A stretch of 64,000 nucleotides of DNA from Epiperipatus broadwayi. Its lineage: Eukaryota > Animalia > Onychophora. The stretch is taken from positions 4,092,001 through 4,156,000 of the forward strand of contig JAQFVV010000003.1 in the NCBI GenBank assembly GCA_028023455.1. Reading direction: 5' to 3'. The notes under the pieces were generated by a model, which was not told the DNA's origin, ran no database searches, and was given only the letters and a program-made list of their open reading frames with translations. Each line of letters starts with the position of its first letter. Positions within the stretch are counted from its first letter, which is position 1. This document shows positions 7,588 to 58,079 of this stretch, one piece after another. The position numbers and the translations under genes were made by a program.

Positions 7588-8041
7588 CAAAGCAAAGCAA
7601 AACTCCATCCTGTGCTAAACAGAGTAATCAATGGATGCCAGAAGGCTTGTGCATAAAATCCCTATCTAATGCCTACTCATCCAATATCCCCAGACTAGTT
7701 TCTGGCTTGTGGCCTTCGTCAGTGAGGAGCTTTGGATCTGAGAGCACTGCATCTAGATCTTAGGATCTTATGCAACCCTCTAGCAACCACCTTTTATCTC
7801 TACTTAACTACAAAACTATGAGCATGAAATTGGAGAACACAAAAAATATTTTCAATCTAAGCTAGTCTGGGGATATTGGATGAGTAGGCATTAGATAGGG
7901 ATTTTATGCACAAGCCTTCTGGAATCCATTGATTACTCTGTTTAGCACAGGTGGCACTACTATATGGAGTTTTGCTTTGCTTTGTTTATAAACAATTATG
8001 TGCTAGTATTGGAGATGTGATCATGTGATGCTTGCTGGTTT
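7588..8041. mobile_element. Non-autonomous Penelope-like fold-back element (family U3) with 14-bp TSD
   Basis: Inverted arms ~7588-7699 and ~7862-7984; a 57-nt tail on the right arm only; TSD AACTATGTTGTCAA at 7574-7587 and 8042-8055. Contains an HHR. Related copies at 30243-30400 and 39903-40085. Confidence 0.8.
7687..7728 (-). ncRNA. Minimal type I hammerhead ribozyme motif (PLE type)
   Basis: Minus strand reads UCCUCA-CUGACGA-A-GGC CACAA GCC-A-GAAA-CUAG-UC-UGGGGA. Stem I has 6 bp (one GU), the core is intact, and stem III is the palindrome ACUAGU with a GUC site. An extra A on each side of stem II is non-canonical. Confidence 0.75.
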
Positions 8042-30400: not shown

Positions 30401-31639
30401 ACGTAGTTCATTTAAGGTAGCTAACTAGTCATATTTAGTATATAGAACATTTTTTTATACCATATATTTTTTATACTATTTTATCATTCTTTGATAATTA
30501 TCACGTGATATCGAAATAGTCAAGTATCTATATTTGATTTTACATTTAGTTGATGCTTTTAAACACTGCATGGAATTAGTGAAACCATATTGGAATAATT
30601 AATGGATAAATTTAAGTTTCACTTTACGGATTGTCAGAATAGATAAATTTTATAATAAAATAGAACAGAAAAATAAAATCTGTAAATGAAACATTTTTTC
30701 ACCTTACATTAAATACTTTTTTTTTAAAATTTATGTAAAATAAACCTAGCATTTTTCATTTATAGCATTAGAATGTATATTTTAATTTTGTACAAAGAAA
30801 TGTAAAAATAAACCTTGTAGCTATTGATATAGTTAGACTTCTACATTTAAAGATTTTATGGATTATAGTTGATGCTTTTAATAGTGAAATGACCATTATC
30901 TAGTATTTTTTTGGGACATTCATCTCAGTTCACTGCTGGTTATTTCTAGTATGCTTTCATTAGTTCTATATAATGATTAAAAATGTAAAACAATGTAAAT
31001 ATCCATACTCAATCAAGCTTTATTATTCCATTTTTTAAGTCTTGAGTTAACACCCCCCCCCCCTTTCCCAACCATAAATCTAGACAAGCTTTGTGTTTAT
31101 TTTCTCTGTTTATCAAGTTTCTACACTCATTTCTTTGAAATGGTTTCAATTTTTTAATGGCAAACTGTATATATAGCTAAAAAAAATTTTGCAGCTTAAG
31201 AAAAAATTAAGAAAGCCATGATTCTGGAGAATTTGTATTGTAAGTACAGAGAAAATTAAAAGTATATGTTTTTTAAACTATTTAATATGATTATAGCCCT
31301 ATTTTGAATAAGAAAAATTTCTGAACTTCAAATTGCAAAATGAAGTTATAGAGCAGAGCAATATCTCTTTCAAATGGATTTAAGTGAAATAATTGTCAGC
31401 TATATTCCTAGAATTTCCTGTTAAAAAATTGTGAACAATAATTTTTTATCTATAAAAATATTGAATGCTTTTTTTTTTTTTATATTTATACTTATGTTTT
31501 TTTTATTCCCATCTTTTTATTAAAAATCTCACATTAGCAAACATATTCGCATAGCAGATTTTCATATTAGAACATTTATAGCATTTTTCATTAATTACTC
31601 CCCCCTTTTAAAAAAACATATTTGCTCTTATTTAAATGT

Positions 31640-31890
31640 TTGAATCCTGCAACCCCAAGATAGGATGTTCCGAAGCCAATAATTGCAAAAGAAAAACCGA
31701 GGAGGCTTATTTTATTATCAGTGATAACAATGCCATAAATAGATGCGATACATGTTTTTCTATTTCGAGAAAATGGACAAATTAATTTGCATTCGCATAT
31801 TTTATTATTTTATAACATTACAGCAATGTTTATAACTTATTTTGGCCATGAATATGATGGAAAACCTCGAAAGTACTAGGCCTAAATTGA
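31640..31890 (+). mobile_element. Penelope-like element 3' remnant (GIY-YIG C-terminus + HHR)
   Basis: 31660-31785 translates IGCSEANNCKRKTEEAYFIISDNNAINRCDTCFSISRKWTN*, which aligns with ICSETNDTKRKVREAYYIVSDPSAINRREACFSLSRKWST* of the PLE at 48445-49080. Confidence 0.8.
31841..31886 (+). ncRNA. Variant-core (A3-U8) minimal hammerhead motif
   Basis: UUUGGCC-AUGAAUA-U-GAUGG AAAA CCUC-GAAA-GUAC-UA-GGCCUAAA. Stem I is GGCC/GGCC, stem II is GA(U)GG/CCUC, and stem III is the palindrome AGUACU. It lies 63 nt after the GIY-YIG stop. Confidence 0.65.
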
Positions 31891-32639
31891 TTTGATTTTT
31901 TTGGTTGCTACTTGCAGCTTCTTCTTCAGCAGGTAAATCGCTTTTATATGCTAATATGTCTGATTGTAATTATAATTTATGTCAACTTCAATATCTGCAC
32001 ATACATTATTTCATAGATAATCCGGAGTAGAATTTATTTGTCACTGAGCTTTCTTAAAAATTTTACAAATTAAATTACATAATTGTTTTATAAAAACTTC
32101 CATGATATTATTACATAGTGATTCTTTTAGTTAATCAGTTTTGTTTTTAATGTCATTGCATATAATTTTCATTTATATCATATATATTTTTTATTTGAAC
32201 AGTTTTTTTGAGGCTTTTGTCCATACTTAATTCTTTCAAAGTGGATCATGAGACATAATTTCACTATCTTTAATCACCAAATATAATATTTTGAGTTTTT
32301 GATTGGGATCTCAACCAAAGTTATTTATATAATCTTTATTTTTTGAATGAAATATATGTCATTAAGTGTTTGAAAATTGGCTCTAGTAATGATAAGAATC
32401 AAATATTCAAATATTTGTTGCAAGTTTGTCATTTATATGGACTTAAAATTCTTGATTGCAGTATGGGGAGGTTTTTTTTTTTTTTTGCTTTCTCTGCATA
32501 TCTCGCACAAATGCAAACAAACTTTTTTTTTTTTTACAATATTTAATAGAAAATATTAATAGTTATTCAAGGAACATGATACTGAAGTGATTTTTAGTTA
32601 AACTATGATATTAACAGCAGTATCTGCTATATTCTAGAG

Positions 32640-39902: not shown

Positions 39903-40085
39903 CCAAAACAGGCAAAACTCTCTATACGTATTGCCACTCAGTGCAAGCCAGAGTAATCAATGGATGCCAGAAGGCTTGTGCATAAAATCCCCATCTAGTG
40001 CCTACTTATCCAATATCCCCAGACTAGTTTCTGGCTTGTGGCCTTCATCAGTGAGGAGCCTTGGATCTGAGAGCACTGCACCTTT
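39903..40085 (-). mobile_element. Family U3 PLE-like repeat copy
   Basis: Highly similar to 7590-7752 and contains an HHR at 40016-40057. Confidence 0.8.
40016..40057 (-). ncRNA. Minimal type I hammerhead ribozyme motif (PLE type)
   Basis: Minus strand reads UCCUCA-CUGAUGA-A-GGC CACAA GCC-A-GAAA-CUAG-UC-UGGGGA. It differs from the 7687 copy only at the variable position 7. Confidence 0.75.
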
Positions 40086-46000: not shown

Positions 46001-48444
46001 GTTTATAGCAGAGATACATCATGAACTATGATTTGAATCTCATATTCTAATTAACTCTTGAAAAATTCCTATTAAAATGCTCCATTTTCGATTTATCAAA
46101 ATTTAAAAGAAAAGCCTAAATTTTTTTTTAAATATTAGAATAGATTTTAATGAAATAAAGTTATTCTTGAAATGTTAATAACTATTATGAGTTTGGATTT
46201 CTAAATATAATAAATATGTTATATTTAATTTTTTTTGAGGCAGGATCTAAATAACCGCAACAATTAATATGTCATGCTGTGGATTCATTTTGTTGTAGTA
46301 TTAATTTTTTTATTATCCAATATGGGTAGATTGTGTTTGACAAATTAAAGAGCAAAATTACGTTTACTTTATATAACAAATTATGATTCATTGAACATGG
46401 AATTATTCAATTCATTTACATATATAAAATTTGAATAGTGCTGCAATGAATTTTTTATTTTTATTTTTCTAATAACAATTGGATTGAACAAAAAAAAAAA
46501 TTATTGTTTATATAAGAAATATTTATTGATTTTGATAATCAAAGGCTTATCAATACTGTATTAGCTCTTGAAATATCATGCTGATGAATTGATAGATTTC
46601 AGGAAATAAAAAAAGACTGCTAAATCCGTAATACTCTCCCTCCTCCACCTATGATTCAAGGCAAATTATCTTAATTACAGAAAAAATAATAACATGGTTT
46701 TCCATTTGGACAATTGTGAAATTGTCTGTTATTATTTAGTAATGGAAAACAGTCAGTAAATTACTGAAATGTATTAAGCTGACATTTAAATTATTCATTG
46801 TAAAAATAAATATCTTGTTTGCATGTATATCTATGTATGTTTCTGCCAATGTTTGCTTAATATTATAATATTTCAATGTGGGATAGTCGATAAATAATCA
46901 CTAAAATAATTAATAATTTAGTCTTGTACAAAATGTTCATTCAAATCTGTGAATAATGATGTATGCATGTGTTTTGATTTCACAATTATAAAGAAAATAT
47001 TTACCCAATTCCAAACAATATATTATTTTTTTAATATGTGAAGTGTTGGTCTAATTTTTCAATCACACCCATTTTCTTTCAGTTTTTCAAAGAAATGAAA
47101 AGCAGAAAGTAACTGGATTCTGGGTGAAATATAACTTGCTATAATTTTAGAAATAAATAGATATTCAATTTCTTATAGTTGAATGTATTGAAGCAAATGT
47201 TACATCATTTAATCAACTGATGAAATCATTCAGTTGTTCTACTTCATGGTACTTTTTATAATCATTCAAAATTGGATTTTAGTATTAAAACTTTATTTTG
47301 TATTAGAATTTAATAAAGTGAAACTTGATTTGTTAGAAATATGACTGTAAATGAAAAACATTTTAAAACGTCGTATTTGAACTTGCAAATGTAGAAAAAA
47401 TCAACGTTTACTTAAGTGAACTTTCTCTAATTGGATAGTACAAAAAAAAAAGCTTTGTTAAATGGATATTTCTTTTTGAAGCACGAACATCTAAATGTGT
47501 AGTTTTCTGTTTTTCATTATGATTGAATATGTTAATATATTTTTAAAAATTAAACATTTTCAAATAAAATCATATTGTTAATAGTATATATTTTTCTGTT
47601 TTAAATAATATTCTGCAAGCATAAATTATGAAAACGTGACAATTCTTTTGCTGATTGCTAAGAACAAAGATATTAAGTGTTTGATTACTCTCACAATCAT
47701 TGCACTAGTAGATGTATTTGTATACTTTGAAGTTTATTTTGACAGATTTCTATAGACATCTGCTGTCTTCAGATTTTTTTAAAAACTAATCAATACAATT
47801 TTTTCCATCAAAATGAACACAAAATTGGCAAAATAGTGCTACAAATAGCCAAAGGGGAGCAAAGGAAAGTTGAAGATCGCAACAGCCCTCTCATTAAAGA
47901 TCTCCTCTTATTGAGGGCTATTAGTTCTCCAAAACTCGTTAAGCAAGAATATCGTATGTAGAATAAGCATTTATAATGGTTGTCTATAGTGAAAATATTG
48001 ACCGGTTACTCCAGCTAAAAAATTACACTAACACAATAAGTTGGGAGTATTATATTAAAATAATAACTTATCGAGTATATGTATATATAAAAATTAAAAA
48101 AACCCTTAATGTAAGTTTATGTAAACTATGCTGTGTGTATTATGCAGGTATTCAATTAAAATATGTATTTATCCACTTTGTTTCCCAAACTCAAAAGATT
48201 TTTTTTAATTTTTTTTTGGGTCGTATTCATTGCTAAGATCACTTTAAACAGAATTTGTTTAAAAAAATGCTTAATATCGTGAAAAAACAATGTTTTCACT
48301 GTCAAAAGTCCAGCAAAGTAGACCGAGAAAGTAAAACTAAACTAGCATCAAATAATTTTTTGCTCTTTTGTACAACTGTTTTGTTGACTGGAAAAAAAAT
48401 CCATACTGAAGTTTTATTTTTTTAAACTCTACAAGAAAGAAAAC

Positions 48445-49080
48445 AAACCGAGAATCCTAATCCCATACATTCACTCAACAGCCCAAAACCTCATTAGTAA
48501 ACTATCAAGTGACTTCGAAGTCGCTTTCCGTTTACCTCCCACCACCAATAGACTGATAAATAACACCAAAGACGATCAAACCTGAACTCACCCCTCAATT
48601 TGTGTACAAAATCATCTGCCCCCAAAGAAACTGTATGGCAACATTATGGAGAGACCAAAACTAACATTGCTACCAGAGTAGCTCAACACAGATCCCTTTA
48701 TAACAGAACCAAAACAAAGCTTGAAGGTAATTCGGTTTTCGTTGAGCACGAGAGAGCCACTGGACACGCTTTTCTACCCACCACAGCCAGTGTCATTTGC
48801 TCTGAAACAAACGACACCAAACGCAAAGTTAGGGAAGCTTATTACATCGTAAGTGACCCATCAGCAATCAACAGAAGAGAGGCCTGCTTTTCCCTATCTC
48901 GAAAATGGTCCACGTAACATCTGCATATAAATTTGCATAAAATTTGCATTAATATTATAGTTATTAATCGAATACAAGTCGCCATGAATATGGGACTATA
49001 AACTGTCCCGAAAGAGCTTGGCGGTAAATTTTAATAATTTCACAGACAATTAATAGCTTCATTATCTGTGCGCAGAGCAC
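48445..49080 (+). mobile_element. Penelope-like element 3' fragment (RT linker + GIY-YIG endonuclease + 3' UTR HHR), frameshifted
   Basis: KPRILIPYI...FEVAF...NNTKD; VYKIICPQRNC then, by frameshift, YGETKTNIATRVAQH...EHERATGH...RKVREAYYI...INR; stop at 48917. Confidence 0.88.
48978..49025 (+). ncRNA. Variant-core (A3-U8) minimal hammerhead motif
   Basis: GUCGCC-AUGAAUA-U-GGGAC UAUAAACU GUCCC-GAAA-GAGC-UU-GGCGGU. Stem I has 5-6 bp and stem II is a perfect 5 bp. It lies 67 nt after the GIY-YIG stop. Confidence 0.65.
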
Positions 49081-49209
49081 ATATATATATATATTAATTT
49101 ATTTTAAATGTTAACGAAGTAAAATCTTAACTATATTATATTACATGAAATTATTTAGAATTTAAAAAAAAAAAGTTTAATAACTTATTTAATTTTTTTT
49201 TTCTCATGT

Positions 49210-49296
49210 GTCATAGCATCAGCCGGGAAGCGAACCCGCTCACCCGGGACAACTGCTTCGTAAAGCAGCCGTCGCTGACCTCTCGACCACTAATGC
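49210..49296 (-). mobile_element. tRNA-like short element, second copy
   Basis: Minus strand reads GCATTAG-TGGTCGAGAGGTCAGC...GCGGGTTCGCTTCCCGG-CTGATGC-TATGACA, homologous to 21884-21972. Confidence 0.7.
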
Positions 49297-51319
49297 TTGA
49301 AATAACTTATTTAATTGATCATTAAAATTTGTTATTTATCATTAGTGTAAGAATAGTAAAATTAGGGTACTAAACATTGTCAAAAGACTACATAAAAAAA
49401 AATACGTACTAAAAAGAAAAAAAAATGTGTAATGCATTTTGTGTTGCATATTGTAATCAATATTTATCACTTTTTTTTTTTTTTACAATATGTACAATAC
49501 AGATCTAAATAAAAAACACTTTATACAGTATATAAATACATACGCTAGCAGTGAAATTTTCTTTTGTCATGAGATGTCGCATTTTATTAAGTTTGGTAGC
49601 CATGGTCTTTGAAAGACATAAAAAATTTTTTGATTATGTGCCGTTGAACCATTTAAATAAATATTAAAGATATGAATCTTTCAGTTTATCTGTATGCAAT
49701 TTTACATAATTTTAATGTGCGATAACATTATATGATGTTTTAACATTGAGCAAATAGATTATTTTTTAATTTAGATTTAGTAATTTTTGATCATACAAAG
49801 TTCATTATGATAACATTTTTTTCTCTTCAAAATAACAATTATGATAACTAAATTACAATATGATGAACATTATTTTACCATAAGCAAAGTTACTGTTAGT
49901 AAAAATTTTAAACCATAAAAGTGAGTAAATACAGTGTATAGTTTTTAAACTAATGTACACGTTTTAGAATTTAATATATTAATGTAAAATACAATTTCGT
50001 TTATTATACTGAATGAAACACTTTTTTGGAAACGGTAATAATTAATACTGAAAATCTTTACTTTGGATATATCATTATTGAAAGTGATTGTCTTGCAAAG
50101 ACATACAATGAAAATAAAATACTGTACATTCATTAGTTGTATTTGTTTATAATCAAAATATTGTATACATCACGATTATATACTGTATTGTGTACTATGA
50201 ATAAACTCTGTAGTGTACAGTTTCAGTATGAGTCGTTATTTTGCATTTGGATGATGTAGTGTTCATAACTATTCTATGACATCATCAATCTTACAAAAGC
50301 CAAAAAATTTTTTTTTACATTTTTTTTAACGATCGTTACAGTGAATAATCAAAATAGTGGGTACAAATTTATGATGATCGCTATTGTGAATCTTCGCATA
50401 AAGATTAAGTGCTAAGCAGGGTATAGGTATACTTTGTAATTATTAATAGCTTAAATGATCAATGAATAATAGAAGGTAGTGCTTATTCATATTTCTGTAT
50501 AAGAGAAATGTGATTGCTGGATATGTAGATATGAGTTCAGAATTCTTCATGATGGTCAGTAGAATCAGAAATTTCTTTTGTATTGTAGATATAGCACTAT
50601 CATCTAATATCCAAAATTATTTAAACTTAATAACGGAGTAGAGAAATTACTGCTTGCAAAAATTGATGATTAATGTTTTTAATTGTCTTATAGTTTCTAT
50701 TTGTTTTTAACACTAGTTGTTTGACTATGCAACACAATTAATTTGTAAATAGAAAATATTTTTTTATGATTTAATGATCTGACTACACAACATATACTCA
50801 TTTCTAGATTGTTTGGTTTTAACATTGCAAAATGTTTTGTAAAGAAAAGTTTTTGAATTTATTGACCAAATTCTTTTGTAAAGTTGGTTCTGAAAGGAAA
50901 TCAATTCTTAAAAAAGAACTGAAATTCCTTGTATTATGAAATTGTTTTAATTAACCACTTAAGTATTCTTTGTTTATTGTTTTCTTTATTTGTAGATGAT
51001 TATATCTTAATAATTCATTTTCTTTCTGATTTCAGGAAAAAAAAAAAAAAATCTTGAGAAAACACTGGTTTGTTAATTTGTTTATAGACATAATCAAGTT
51101 TAGATATTTTATGCTGATTTGTGAAATTTGAAGGACCCTAAAATTTTATTAAGTCATAAAAAGATTATTTTTTTTTTAATCAAAGTTTAAAAAAAAAAAT
51201 TTAGGGTAGTTGAAAAAGTTTTGTAATTTAGATTTGATGAACAAATCTGCTTTTCACATTATGTATTAATTTGATTAATTTGAAATATGAATTATTCAGC
51301 TTAAAATAATACATATATT

Positions 51320-54770: not shown

Positions 54771-55843
54771 ATCTATATAAATGTTCTATATGTTCCTTTT
54801 TTTAAATTTGGAAGAATATGTATATCTGCTTAGAATTTAGTCGTTTCATGTTTTAAAGAAGTTAAGAGTTTAGTTTTTACTTATGTTGAAATATCTGAGG
54901 ATGTGTCCGAGATAAATCAATCAGCAAAACAATCACTAAAATAAAATAATTGGTTAGTTTTTTTCACTGCTCTTGATGCACAATTCATATATTTAGCTAC
55001 TAGAACAATAAGTTACATAACTGCATTAAAGAATTCTTAATTCAAAAATCACTCACTAGATATCTAAATGCAATTGCCTTCATGATTATTTGGGGTGGGG
55101 GGGTGGGGTGATTTGAAACTGGATAATATTGATGACATATTTCAACACAAATATTTTTTTTTTTTAAAAAAAAAAATCAATATATGATAATGTAATAGAA
55201 CATGTAATTCAATTTTTTATTTAAAAATTAATGGGCGAACTTTCATGGAGAAAATATTACTGGTACACTTAAGTCTATTCCTTTGCAGTGCCTTTTTGTT
55301 TTTGATCATATATTTCTATCACATATTAGAAAAGAAATTACCTCACAGAAATTGTAAATTTCTGGATATAATTATTACCTAAGTACTCACATCAAGATCC
55401 CCTTTTTGGATATTCACCCAAAATTTTGGATATTCACCCAAAATCTACAATACAATTATGGTGTAAAAAGTCAAATTCTTATGACATCCCAAATAAATTT
55501 CTTTTTTCTGATCTTACAATAAAGTTATCTGGATTTGATTTTCTTAGTTACAACCAGTGTCTCATCAACAGATTCAGGAAAACCACGATTACTGTGCTCA
55601 CTTGTTTCATAAATAGAATTATCAATCACTGATCTTTGTAAATGTGTGCCAAATAAAGGTACAAACTGCATAGTTAATGTTTCCTGAAGGTTTGTGGTGA
55701 TGGTGTTTTAGTTGTATTTTTATATTGGACTATTTCCATCATCTAATATATGTATTGAATGTCTTTAGAAAAATTTAACTTTATTTAAATATTCCAAATA
55801 CATCCAACTATTAGTAATAGCATGTCAAACAGGTTAGTATTTG

Positions 55844-55886
55844 CACAACATTTCGAGAGGTATTATTCTCCCCTCTTCTTCAGGCG
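55844..55886 (-). ncRNA. Minimal type I hammerhead motif, core intact but stems I/III decayed
   Basis: CGC-CUGAAGA-A-GAGGGG AGAAUAAUA CCUCUC-GAAA-UG-UU-GUG. This fits an ancestral GAAACGUUGCG with two CpG-type transitions (inference). Confidence 0.6.
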
Positions 55887-55904
55887 TTACTGGTCTGACC
55901 AGTG

Positions 55905-55992
55905 ACAGTATTAGCATGGGATTCAAACCTGGGTCCTTAGATTCTTGATTATTGAATTTTAAGGTAACACTCTAACCAACAGCCATCCTGTC
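55905..55992 (-). mobile_element. tRNA-derived SINE-like fragment inside the PLE 3' UTR
   Basis: A-box-like TGGCTGTTGGTTAGA and B-box-like GGTTTGAATCCC on the minus strand. Confidence 0.45.
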
Positions 55993-58079
55993 AAAGGCAA
56001 CAGTCAGTAGAAACTTCATATACTTATCTATGAGATGTTCCTCCTGATTTCTCCACTTTTTTCTAAGAGCAAAGTTGATTAGTGGTTTCCATACATTATG
56101 TCAAAATTGGAAAAGAATAAAAATCCTTAACCATTGTCATGTGAGCAGCTTCTTTAAACTTTCTTCTTTGTACCTTTTCTTCTCTTACCCAATATTTTTG
56201 TATTTTCCCAATTGAACATATGTTCAGTGGTACATACAGGGTCTGCTACCTTAGTCACATCTGTTTTCTCTCTTCTAATCATCAGTTTATGTTTTTGTAA
56301 GTGCTTTTCAATGGGATGATTGGTCTCATCAATGTATGTTCTTCCACATTCACATGGTATTTCATAGTTGCAGTTTTTTCTTTTCAGCATTTCAAGTTTA
56401 GGGGTTTGTAGATTTCTTGTAGTGTAGTATGGCTCTGGAAAACTTCTGATGTTATACTGATTGCAGATTTTCCTTAATTTGTCTGCTATTTTTGGAATGT
56501 AAGGGTACACTACAGTACCAATAATTGTCTTTTCTCTTGATGGTTCTTTTTGTTGTCTATTTAACGTTTTATTAACAGCTGATGGATAACCATTTTTCAT
56601 AAGAATTCTAGTATAGATTTTTTCTTTTTCCAAATTGCTGGTTTCTGAACAAACTTCTTTTGCTCTGTTCCATAGTGATAGTATAACTTCATGTTTTGTG
56701 TTTCTGGTGTGACTGAATGTATAGGCTAGGTATTTCTAATTTTTATCTAGTGTTGATTTATTGTTTAGTTGTTGGGAGCAAAGGGTGGGAAGTTATGATC
56801 ACATCATTTCTGTGCTTATTGATTATAAAAAGCAGTATATTTGATAATTAGCTTCTTAATCAGCCAGGCTAGGCTCTTAACTAGCATTAATTACAAATCA
56901 GAATTTTATGTAAGATTTATTTTATTTGTTTAATTAAAAAAAAAAAGAAATCTGACAAATTTATTGCTTGTGAATTCATAAGTTTGAACATTGGAAGTGA
57001 GAGAACTGAAATCGAGCCTAAGATCTTGCTCTCCAAAGTCTGACTATATCATGCAAAGCATTTGCTTTATTTGAAAATGTAGTATAAAATATTTCTATAA
57101 GCACACATAATTATATACTCTTAAGCAAGTAGGAATTATAGCAGTTCTATATTTTATAAATCACCATAAGCGCTAAATATAAGTTATTTACTTTATTTGA
57201 AAGAGTCGTACAAAATTCATAATCATTAAGGCATCGCTTTTGCATAATTAGTACATACATATTTTTCATATATTTTTAAATTTCAATGTAATACATAGAA
57301 GTAAGTAAAATGTGGAGCTATTTCCATGTAATACTTAAAAACATGTTTAGCAGTGGTATAACTAGGAAACTTAATTACAATTGACAACCCTAAGGCTAAA
57401 CTACTTTACTCTAGTATCTCATAATAGTATTTTTGTCTTGAGTTTACTTAAGAACAAAAGATGCTATTTCCATGTAATAACTAGATATGTCTAATTAAAT
57501 TCAAGACGTAATTATTGTGTATTGAGTATTACTTAGGATTAATTGTCAAGAGTAATTGGTTTCCTAGCATCATCATTGTAAAACATGTAAGGAAATAACC
57601 CCTTACCTTGTTTACATCATAATAAAGTCATAAAAATATTTAAAAGTAATATATATATACATACACACTATATATCATTAAATCATTAGAATAGTGGTAG
57701 AATGACAGACACCAAAGCTATTAATATATATAATCACACCTCCCACTTTCATTCCCAATGCTCAAACTTTTTATGAATTACCAAGAAATAAACCAATTTT
57801 TTTATTTAATAATCAAAAAAAAAAATACTGTTATTGTAGCCAATTATTACAATTAACATTAAACCGTTTTTTTTTTTAAACATACTGTAATTCCTACAAT
57901 ATTACAATGACAACATGGAAAAGATAATATATCTAAGTGACAATAAATTATCTGGAATTACTGTTAGATGCAAGGCTTTGTATCTTGTCAGCAATAAGTT
58001 TTTAAAAAAAAAAAATTTTTAAACTAATTTCTAGTTACTGAATGTTAAGACTAAATTTAGCAATACTACTGTAGTTTAT

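Follow-up and report, generated by a model that had tools for sequence, protein, structure and literature searches.

Minimal type I hammerhead motifs were described in the terminal repeats of Penelope-type elements (PLEs) of metazoans (Cervera and De la Pena, 2014; PMC4209133). These motifs have as a hallmark one unpaired nucleotide between A9 and G10.1; they cleave poorly in vitro even with a canonical core and show very low activity. The same study reported a U3-A8 covariation of the core in the Cercyon PLEs of Schistosoma mansoni, with about 1,300 matches that are missed by a CUGANGA descriptor. Perreault et al. (2011; PMC3088659) likewise reported natural U3-A8 hammerheads and noted in vitro activity of 3/8 covariants. 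In the Poseidon PLE ‘PAc’ of Anolis carolinensis, cleavage is lost with either of the single exchanges C3G or G8C, and combining the two recovers part of it (Frangieh et al., 2024; PMC11167929). Cleavage of the PAc hammerhead requires the PLE protein. Hammerhead-dead PAc RNAs are nevertheless still inserted in vitro, and no RNA-seq ends were observed at the site (PMC11167929). Naiad PLEs proliferate without canonical hammerheads (Craig et al.; PMC8557442). PLE hammerheads are thus poor cleavers in vitro, dispensable for insertion in the one reconstituted system and absent from one whole clade.

We analyzed a window of 64,000 nucleotides from Epiperipatus broadwayi, and all coordinates given here are positions in this window. 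The segment at 48978-49025 on the plus strand reads GUCGCC AUGAAUA U GGGAC UAUAAACU GUCCC GAAA GAGC UU GGCGGU. A sequence-only reading had proposed a hammerhead here, and its coordinates, letters and stems were all found as given. The 5' strand of stem I (GUCGCC, 48978-48983) pairs with the 3' strand (GGCGGU, 49020-49025) in 6 bp, made up of four G-C pairs and two G-U wobbles. The core box AUGAAUA (48984-48990) stands in the place of the canonical CUGANGA and supplies A3, U4, G5, A6, A7, U8 and A9; it is the same in a second copy discussed below. An extra unpaired U at 48991 lies between A9 and G10.1. Stem II with its loop UAUAAACU occupies 48992-49009; its arms GGGAC (48992-48996) and GUCCC (49005-49009) form 5 bp, the first of which is the G10.1-C11.1 pair between G 48992 and C 49009, as likewise found in the second copy. 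G12, A13, A14 and A15.1 follow at 49010-49013, the stem III insert GAGC at 49014-49017, and U16.1 and U17 at 49018-49019. From the hammerhead numbering, the cleavage site is predicted between 49019 and 49020.

Stems I and II flank the core and both ends of the motif lie in stem I, which is the type I layout. All invariant core bases, namely U4, G5, A6, A9, G12, A13, A14, A15.1 and U16.1, are present, together with an H17 (here U). The pair C3-G8 is replaced: position 3 is A (48984) and position 8 is U (48989), so that the pair is still Watson-Crick. The unconstrained minimum-free-energy fold of the 48-mer consists of exactly stems I and II (-17.6 kcal/mol, z = -3.2), and only one of 200 shuffles folded as well. 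By these features, the segment is a genuine type I minimal, dimer-type PLE hammerhead motif with an A3-U8 core.

How does this motif compare with the described systems? Like the minimal hammerheads of Cervera and De la Pena (PMC4209133), it is placed behind an RT/GIY-YIG ORF, has an open stem I within their range of 4-6 bp, and carries the unpaired nucleotide after A9, the G10.1-C11.1 pair and a 1-bp stem III. The very high copy number and the heterogeneous but compensated stems of those hammerheads recur in the present lineage, and their short palindromic insert corresponds to the GCGC of the family majority and the GUAC of the second copy. The locus differs from them in its core, which is AUGAAUA and not CUGANGA, and in the non-palindromic insert GAGC of the copy at 48978-49025. 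The U3-A8 hammerheads also show a Watson-Crick covariation at 3/8, and Cercyon, too, is a high-copy PLE missed by canonical descriptors; here, however, the orientation of the pair is reversed, with the purine at 3 and the pyrimidine at 8. PAc resembles the locus as a PLE-borne hammerhead that depends on the 3-8 pair, but its natural pair is the canonical C3-G8 and its G3-C8 swap was engineered. Moreover, the PAc hammerhead overlaps the start of the ORF, unlike the motif at 48978-49025, which lies behind it. The analogous natural U3-A8 swap is accepted as a hammerhead in the literature. A full-text literature search for ‘hammerhead’ together with A3-U8 returned no paper naming A3-U8 in a natural hammerhead, a prior mention being possible. 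Work by Lunse et al. in 2017, by Przybilski and Hammann in 2007 and by Nelson and Uhlenbeck in 2008 reportedly showed that Watson-Crick exchanges at 3-8 keep a reduced, context-dependent activity.

The motif is carried by a 5'-truncated PLE insertion of about 700 bp (48424-49120, plus strand, with an approximate 3' boundary) that is nested in another repeat, as seen from empty sites and sequencing depth. Contigs of the DNA run X1 connect 48423 to about 49141 without an intervening PLE and represent paralogous empty sites. Depth rises about a thousand-fold, from 13.7 in unique flank to 10^4-10^5 inside the PLE fragment. The flanking segments 48381-48423 and 49141-49190 are part of another, moderately repeated element, and in several DNA contigs the two flanks are joined via 20-33 other letters, again as paralogous sites without the PLE insertion.

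Inside the insertion, a decayed coding remnant of a GIY-YIG endonuclease (48424-48917, plus strand) was recognized by three-frame translation, phmmer and reciprocal tblastn. One open frame spans only its last 105 codons (48600-48917). Upstream of 48600, three-frame translations show the endonuclease coding sequence scattered across three frames and interrupted by stops. This truncated copy lacks the RT part and retains only the decayed endonuclease end. The PLE fragment at 48424-49120 is a relic, truncated and frameshifted; selection on the motif would therefore have acted on source elements and not on this copy. The frame ends in the TAA at 48915-48917, and A3 lies 67 nt beyond the last base of this codon, precisely the distance between stop and core that had been noted beforehand. 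The spacer between the stop and the hammerhead (48918-48977, plus strand) holds two ATTTGCAT motifs, at 48931 and 48942.

For the 105-aa frame, Pfam gave no match and a word-indexed protein search gave no relatives. An exhaustive protein search (phmmer) retrieved six distant PLE-like proteins with E values from 1e-4 to 8e-4. Of three relatives examined with a gene table, one shows RVT_1 (weak) together with HTH_animal, and another shows HTH_animal. The contigs of four of the relatives contained no clean hammerhead, and one of them contained a degenerate motif. This motif lies at 1100-1150 of a JGI metagenome contig (L004), behind a distant PLE-like ORF, and reads GC CGGACGA A GACCGAC..GUUGGUC GAAA AUUU GC. 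It has G for U at core position 4 and is either decayed or another core variant. A conserved hairpin 3' of the hammerhead was considered as a possible RT initiation site; this idea was dropped, as the folds of the two copies were neither significant nor homologous.

Within the window, nhmmer found a single relative of the PLE fragment, with an envelope at 31633-31969. This copy (copy A; we refer to the hammerhead at 48978-49025 with its element as copy B) consists of what little remains of the GIY-YIG C-terminus (31633-31786, plus strand, by tblastn, nhmmer and translation) and an A3-U8 hammerhead at 31844-31882 on the plus strand, GGCC AUGAAUA U GAUGG AAAA CCUC GAAA GUAC UA GGCC. The distance from the GIY-YIG remnant to the hammerhead is about equal in the two copies. 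The protein C-termini had been described as homologous yet diverged, and tblastn agrees, with 53% identity over 47 aa between copies A and B. Copy A also carries, at 31844-31882, the stem I and stem II sequences that had been listed as differing from those of copy B. The octamer ATTTGCAT occurs eight times in the window, and three of these occurrences (31785, 48931 and 48942, all on the plus strand) fall into the spacers of about 60 nt between stop and hammerhead of the A3-U8 copies. Apart from the octamer, the spacers of the two copies cannot be aligned. The terminal repeat of the PLE may thus have kept the octamer as a promoter-type element.

We compared the two copies segment by segment against shuffled sequences. 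The last 141 coding nucleotides are identical at 82 positions (shuffles 77.6 ± 3.9), the spacer from the stop to stem I at 37 (shuffles 35.4 ± 2.5) and the 60 nt downstream at 34 (shuffles 32.4 ± 2.6). The hammerhead, with 32 identical positions (shuffles 23.7 ± 2.2, +3.8 sd), is the sole segment above the shuffle level. Two contiguous blocks, GCCAUGAAUAUG (12/12) and CGAAAG (6/6), are unchanged between the copies. The stems contain compensatory changes: in stem I, pair 2.4-1.4 is reversed between the copies (C-G versus G-C), and in stem II, a G-C pair at 10.2-11.2 of one copy corresponds to A-U in the other. The sequence-only reading had suggested a conserved fold and variant core combined with a turnover of the stem sequences, the pattern of selection, and the saturated flanks and compensatory changes bear this out. 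Since the flanks are saturated and the hammerhead is conserved with compensatory stems, the comparison, which comprises two copies plus one contig depth table, argues for purifying selection on the hammerhead fold in both lineages' source elements. Copies A and B share the A3-U8 state by descent; it arose once, before the lineages split, and was not gained twice.

Contigs of four public runs were aligned to 48350-49250 at a likeness of at least 80%. In one DNA run, 16,242 contigs match this region, 1,070 of them at a likeness of at least 99% and 4,257 at 95-99%. The hammerhead lineage is a very high-copy family. Among the best 40 of 174 differences from the window, a single one falls inside the 48-nt motif, namely 49015 A>C. 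The C at 49015 makes up 71% of the depth in DNA run X1 and still more in X5 (89%) and X8 (93%); in X7 its share is only 5%. The stem III insert of the family is mostly GCGC, and GAGC is a private mutation of the copy at 48978-49025. The contrast GAGC versus GUAC that had been drawn between the two copies thus holds for the letters of this copy and does not describe the family, whose majority insert is GCGC. No majority difference affects the core (48984-48990) among the same best 40 of 174 differences. A3 and U8 are the majority state in the family, which does not imply invariance, as contigs drop rare variants.

The insert matters because PLE minimal hammerheads are thought to act as dimers that pair via a palindromic insert (PMC4209133). 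With the adjoining bases, the family insert (AGCGCU) and that of copy A (AGUACU) are perfect palindromes, and that of the copy at 48978-49025 (AGAGCU) is not. The predicted dimer of the window sequence has -36.1 kcal/mol versus -35.2 kcal/mol for two monomers and forms no helix III. For a second prediction, a single letter of the read table, the C at 49015, was substituted into the 48-nt motif; the predicted dimer then adopts the double-hammerhead topology at -42.1 kcal/mol versus -35.2 kcal/mol for two monomers. The AGUACU helix III also forms in the predicted dimer of copy A (-18.6 versus -12.8 kcal/mol), and one canonical-core copy from the window is likewise predicted to form a double hammerhead (-22.2 versus -17.8 kcal/mol). 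According to these folds, the private C-to-A change at 49015 broke the palindrome needed for the dimer.

Is the motif transcribed? The run X5 is labelled as probable RNA, and its data consist of assembled contigs only. In X5, the final stretch of the element (approximately 300 nt, with the hammerhead) has about ten times the depth of the coding part; in the DNA run X1, it is the endonuclease region that exceeds the hammerhead region in depth, by about five-fold. This suggests that the 3' ends, or non-autonomous relatives sharing them, are transcribed. The X5 contigs, which have no end-specific resolution, displayed neither a drop in depth at 49019/49020 nor a position with many molecule ends. 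At least one X5 contig spans 49019/49020, and two contigs end at 49020 and 49021. We rejected these two ends as evidence of cleavage, since de Bruijn contigs of repeats stop at branch points, and the ends are 1-2 nt off, coexist with a spanning contig and form no end cluster.

Taken together, we consider it probable that the locus represents a Penelope-type minimal hammerhead with an A3-U8 core that was kept by selection in source PLEs, the copy at 48978-49025 being a relic. In a very high-copy PLE lineage, the core pair C3-G8 would have been replaced by the isosteric Watson-Crick pair A3-U8. Stem III would be too short on its own, and two copies would pair via the palindromic insert to give an active double hammerhead. 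In the source elements, the motif would sit in the repeat behind the endonuclease gene, and selection would most likely preserve it because the transcript has to fold into a hammerhead. Its probable purpose would be a slow self-cleavage after U17 (H17), with help from a partner copy and from the protein that the element encodes, and this self-cleavage would process transcripts of tandem copies. The copy at 48978-49025 itself is dead: it is truncated and frameshifted, has no partner hammerhead nearby and carries a palindrome broken at 49015.

Several observations support this explanation. The exchanges at positions 3 and 8 jointly yield a Watson-Crick pair, and all other invariant core bases were kept. 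Among the best 40 of 174 differences, the sole change within the motif restores the palindrome and the predicted dimer. Canonical-core hammerheads of like architecture occur in the same window. The published U3-A8 covariation (PMC4209133; PMC3088659) and the PAc double swap (PMC11167929) lend further support. On the other hand, an A-U pair is weaker than a C-G pair and PLE minimal hammerheads are poor cleavers, both of which speak against the explanation, as do the insertion of PAc RNA that lacks an active hammerhead, the success of the Naiads and the depth profile of X5. Catalytic competence of the A3-U8 core is plausible, and we would place it about halfway between likely and unlikely; cleavage as the selected function is likewise what we infer. 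The wider proposal, that A3-U8 is a naturally selected and catalytically competent core sustaining a PLE lineage of thousands of copies, strikes us as evenly balanced.

The leading alternative is a conserved non-catalytic, protein-binding fold. The fold including the 3-8 pair would then be kept as a binding or assembly site for the RT-endonuclease or for a host factor, and cleavage by the A3-U8 version may be absent altogether. We regard this as unlikely. In its favor, PAc cleavage needs the PLE protein, so that the protein contacts the hammerhead RNA region, PAc catalytic mutants insert in vitro, and RNA-seq showed no cleaved ends (PMC11167929); the X5 profile around 49019/49020, without depth drop or end cluster, and the very weak in vitro activity of PLE minimal hammerheads (PMC4209133) fit as well. 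However, the retention of the other catalytic-core bases together with a Watson-Crick 3-8 pair is what the geometry of the active site demands and exceeds the needs of a generic protein-binding hairpin. The palindromic insert was moreover kept through a double change, GUAC versus GCGC, which fits the dimer ribozyme model.

Considerably less probable still is neutral drift, in which a dead hammerhead would hitch-hike on a successful PLE, its core changes having been fixed by chance and the likeness of the copies reflecting recent ancestry. The dispensability of the hammerhead for PAc insertion in vitro (PMC11167929) and its absence from the prolific Naiads (PMC8557442) would be in keeping with such drift, and the copy at 48978-49025, with its frameshifts and broken palindrome, is itself decaying. 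Recent ancestry is hard to reconcile with copies A and B being saturated everywhere else and identical at the 12/12 and 6/6 contiguous core positions, and their stem differences are compensatory and not random. It is also improbable that two neutral hits would yield a Watson-Crick pair exactly at 3/8 and leave the other core bases unchanged.

A chance match in AT-rich DNA has a negligible likelihood and is refuted by the homologous second copy and the depth of the family. We defined a strict A3-U8 descriptor, which allows 0-1 extra nucleotides and up to 8 nt of insert and asks for GAAA, U-H and no fewer than 4 bp in each of stems I and II; it matches once in the window, at 48978-49025. Dinucleotide shuffles of the window gave 0.08 matches each, with a match in 8 of 100 shuffles; this background, together with the lack of an Rfam match, is what a chance origin has in its favor, and taken alone, without its context, the motif is only suggestive. 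A GIY-YIG stop no more than 100 nt away, and the recurrence of this arrangement, with about the same spacing, behind the GIY-YIG remnant of a homologous element, make chance negligible, and thousands of near copies in public contigs weigh against chance too. Outside this family, a 20-base pattern common to both copies was found 23 times in public metagenome contigs, and none of the 23 unrelated matches had both stems. The sequence pattern thus does not by itself bring the stems with it. The same pattern had no match in the viral contigs scanned.

The Rfam hammerhead models gave no match to 48978-49025, neither at the gathering score nor at E values up to 10. They likewise missed, at E values up to 10, the canonical-core PLE hammerhead at 40016-40057. 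Since this control is missed too, the negative Rfam result is uninformative; the models do not cover the minimal architecture.

The step past the published U3-A8 covariation is modest. Its main value is that nature has here performed a compensatory-mutation experiment on the core of a retrotransposon hammerhead: the core pair was changed on both sides and the rest of the core, the stems and the dimer palindrome were kept, which argues that the active fold is selected in vivo. The forms C3-G8, U3-A8 and A3-U8 offer a natural mutant series for the study of selection on the active fold. If the A3-U8 core were indeed competent, evolution would provide direct evidence for the importance of the active-site 3-8 pair, and with it of cleavage or ligation, in the life cycle of PLEs, despite the dispensability of the ribozyme in vitro. 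Standard descriptors would then overlook large ribozyme populations in animal genomes. Searches based on CUGANGA as well as the Rfam models miss such motifs, so that animal hammerhead counts are underestimated.

The window's canonical-core hammerheads, at 7687-7728, 40016-40057 and about 55843-55888, all lie on the minus strand. They share an extra A after A9 and the GAAA, have the core CUGAYGA or CUGAAGA, and belong to element families other than the A3-U8 PLE lineage. Those at 7687-7728 and 40016-40057 are near-identical (UCCUCA CUGAYGA A GGC..GCC A GAAA CUAG UC UGGGGA) and resemble the motif at 48978-49025 in architecture, with a 6-bp stem I and a palindromic CUAG insert. Both sit in ORF-less elements, the one at 7687-7728 in a fold-back element. 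The stretch 55843-56735 on the minus strand contains a third PLE fragment (tblastn 56190-56735). Behind it come a tRNA-like block that includes a B-box-like GGTTTGAATCC (about 55900-55985, minus strand) and then a minimal hammerhead with the canonical core CUGAAGA and a weak stem I (about 55843-55888, minus strand).

Close to the PLE fragment, 49195-49300 on the minus strand is occupied by a very small tRNA-like SINE (about 106 bp), whose low-coordinate end carries a T-run. At 49214-49297, ARAGORN predicts a tRNA of undetermined type, and a weak Rfam match (26 bits) is tRNA-Sec-like. The SINE is flanked at 49179-49194 and 49301-49316 by a perfect 16-bp direct repeat, AATAACTTATTTAATT, which is likely its target-site duplication. 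Its word depth in a DNA run exceeds one million and is far above that of the adjoining PLE.
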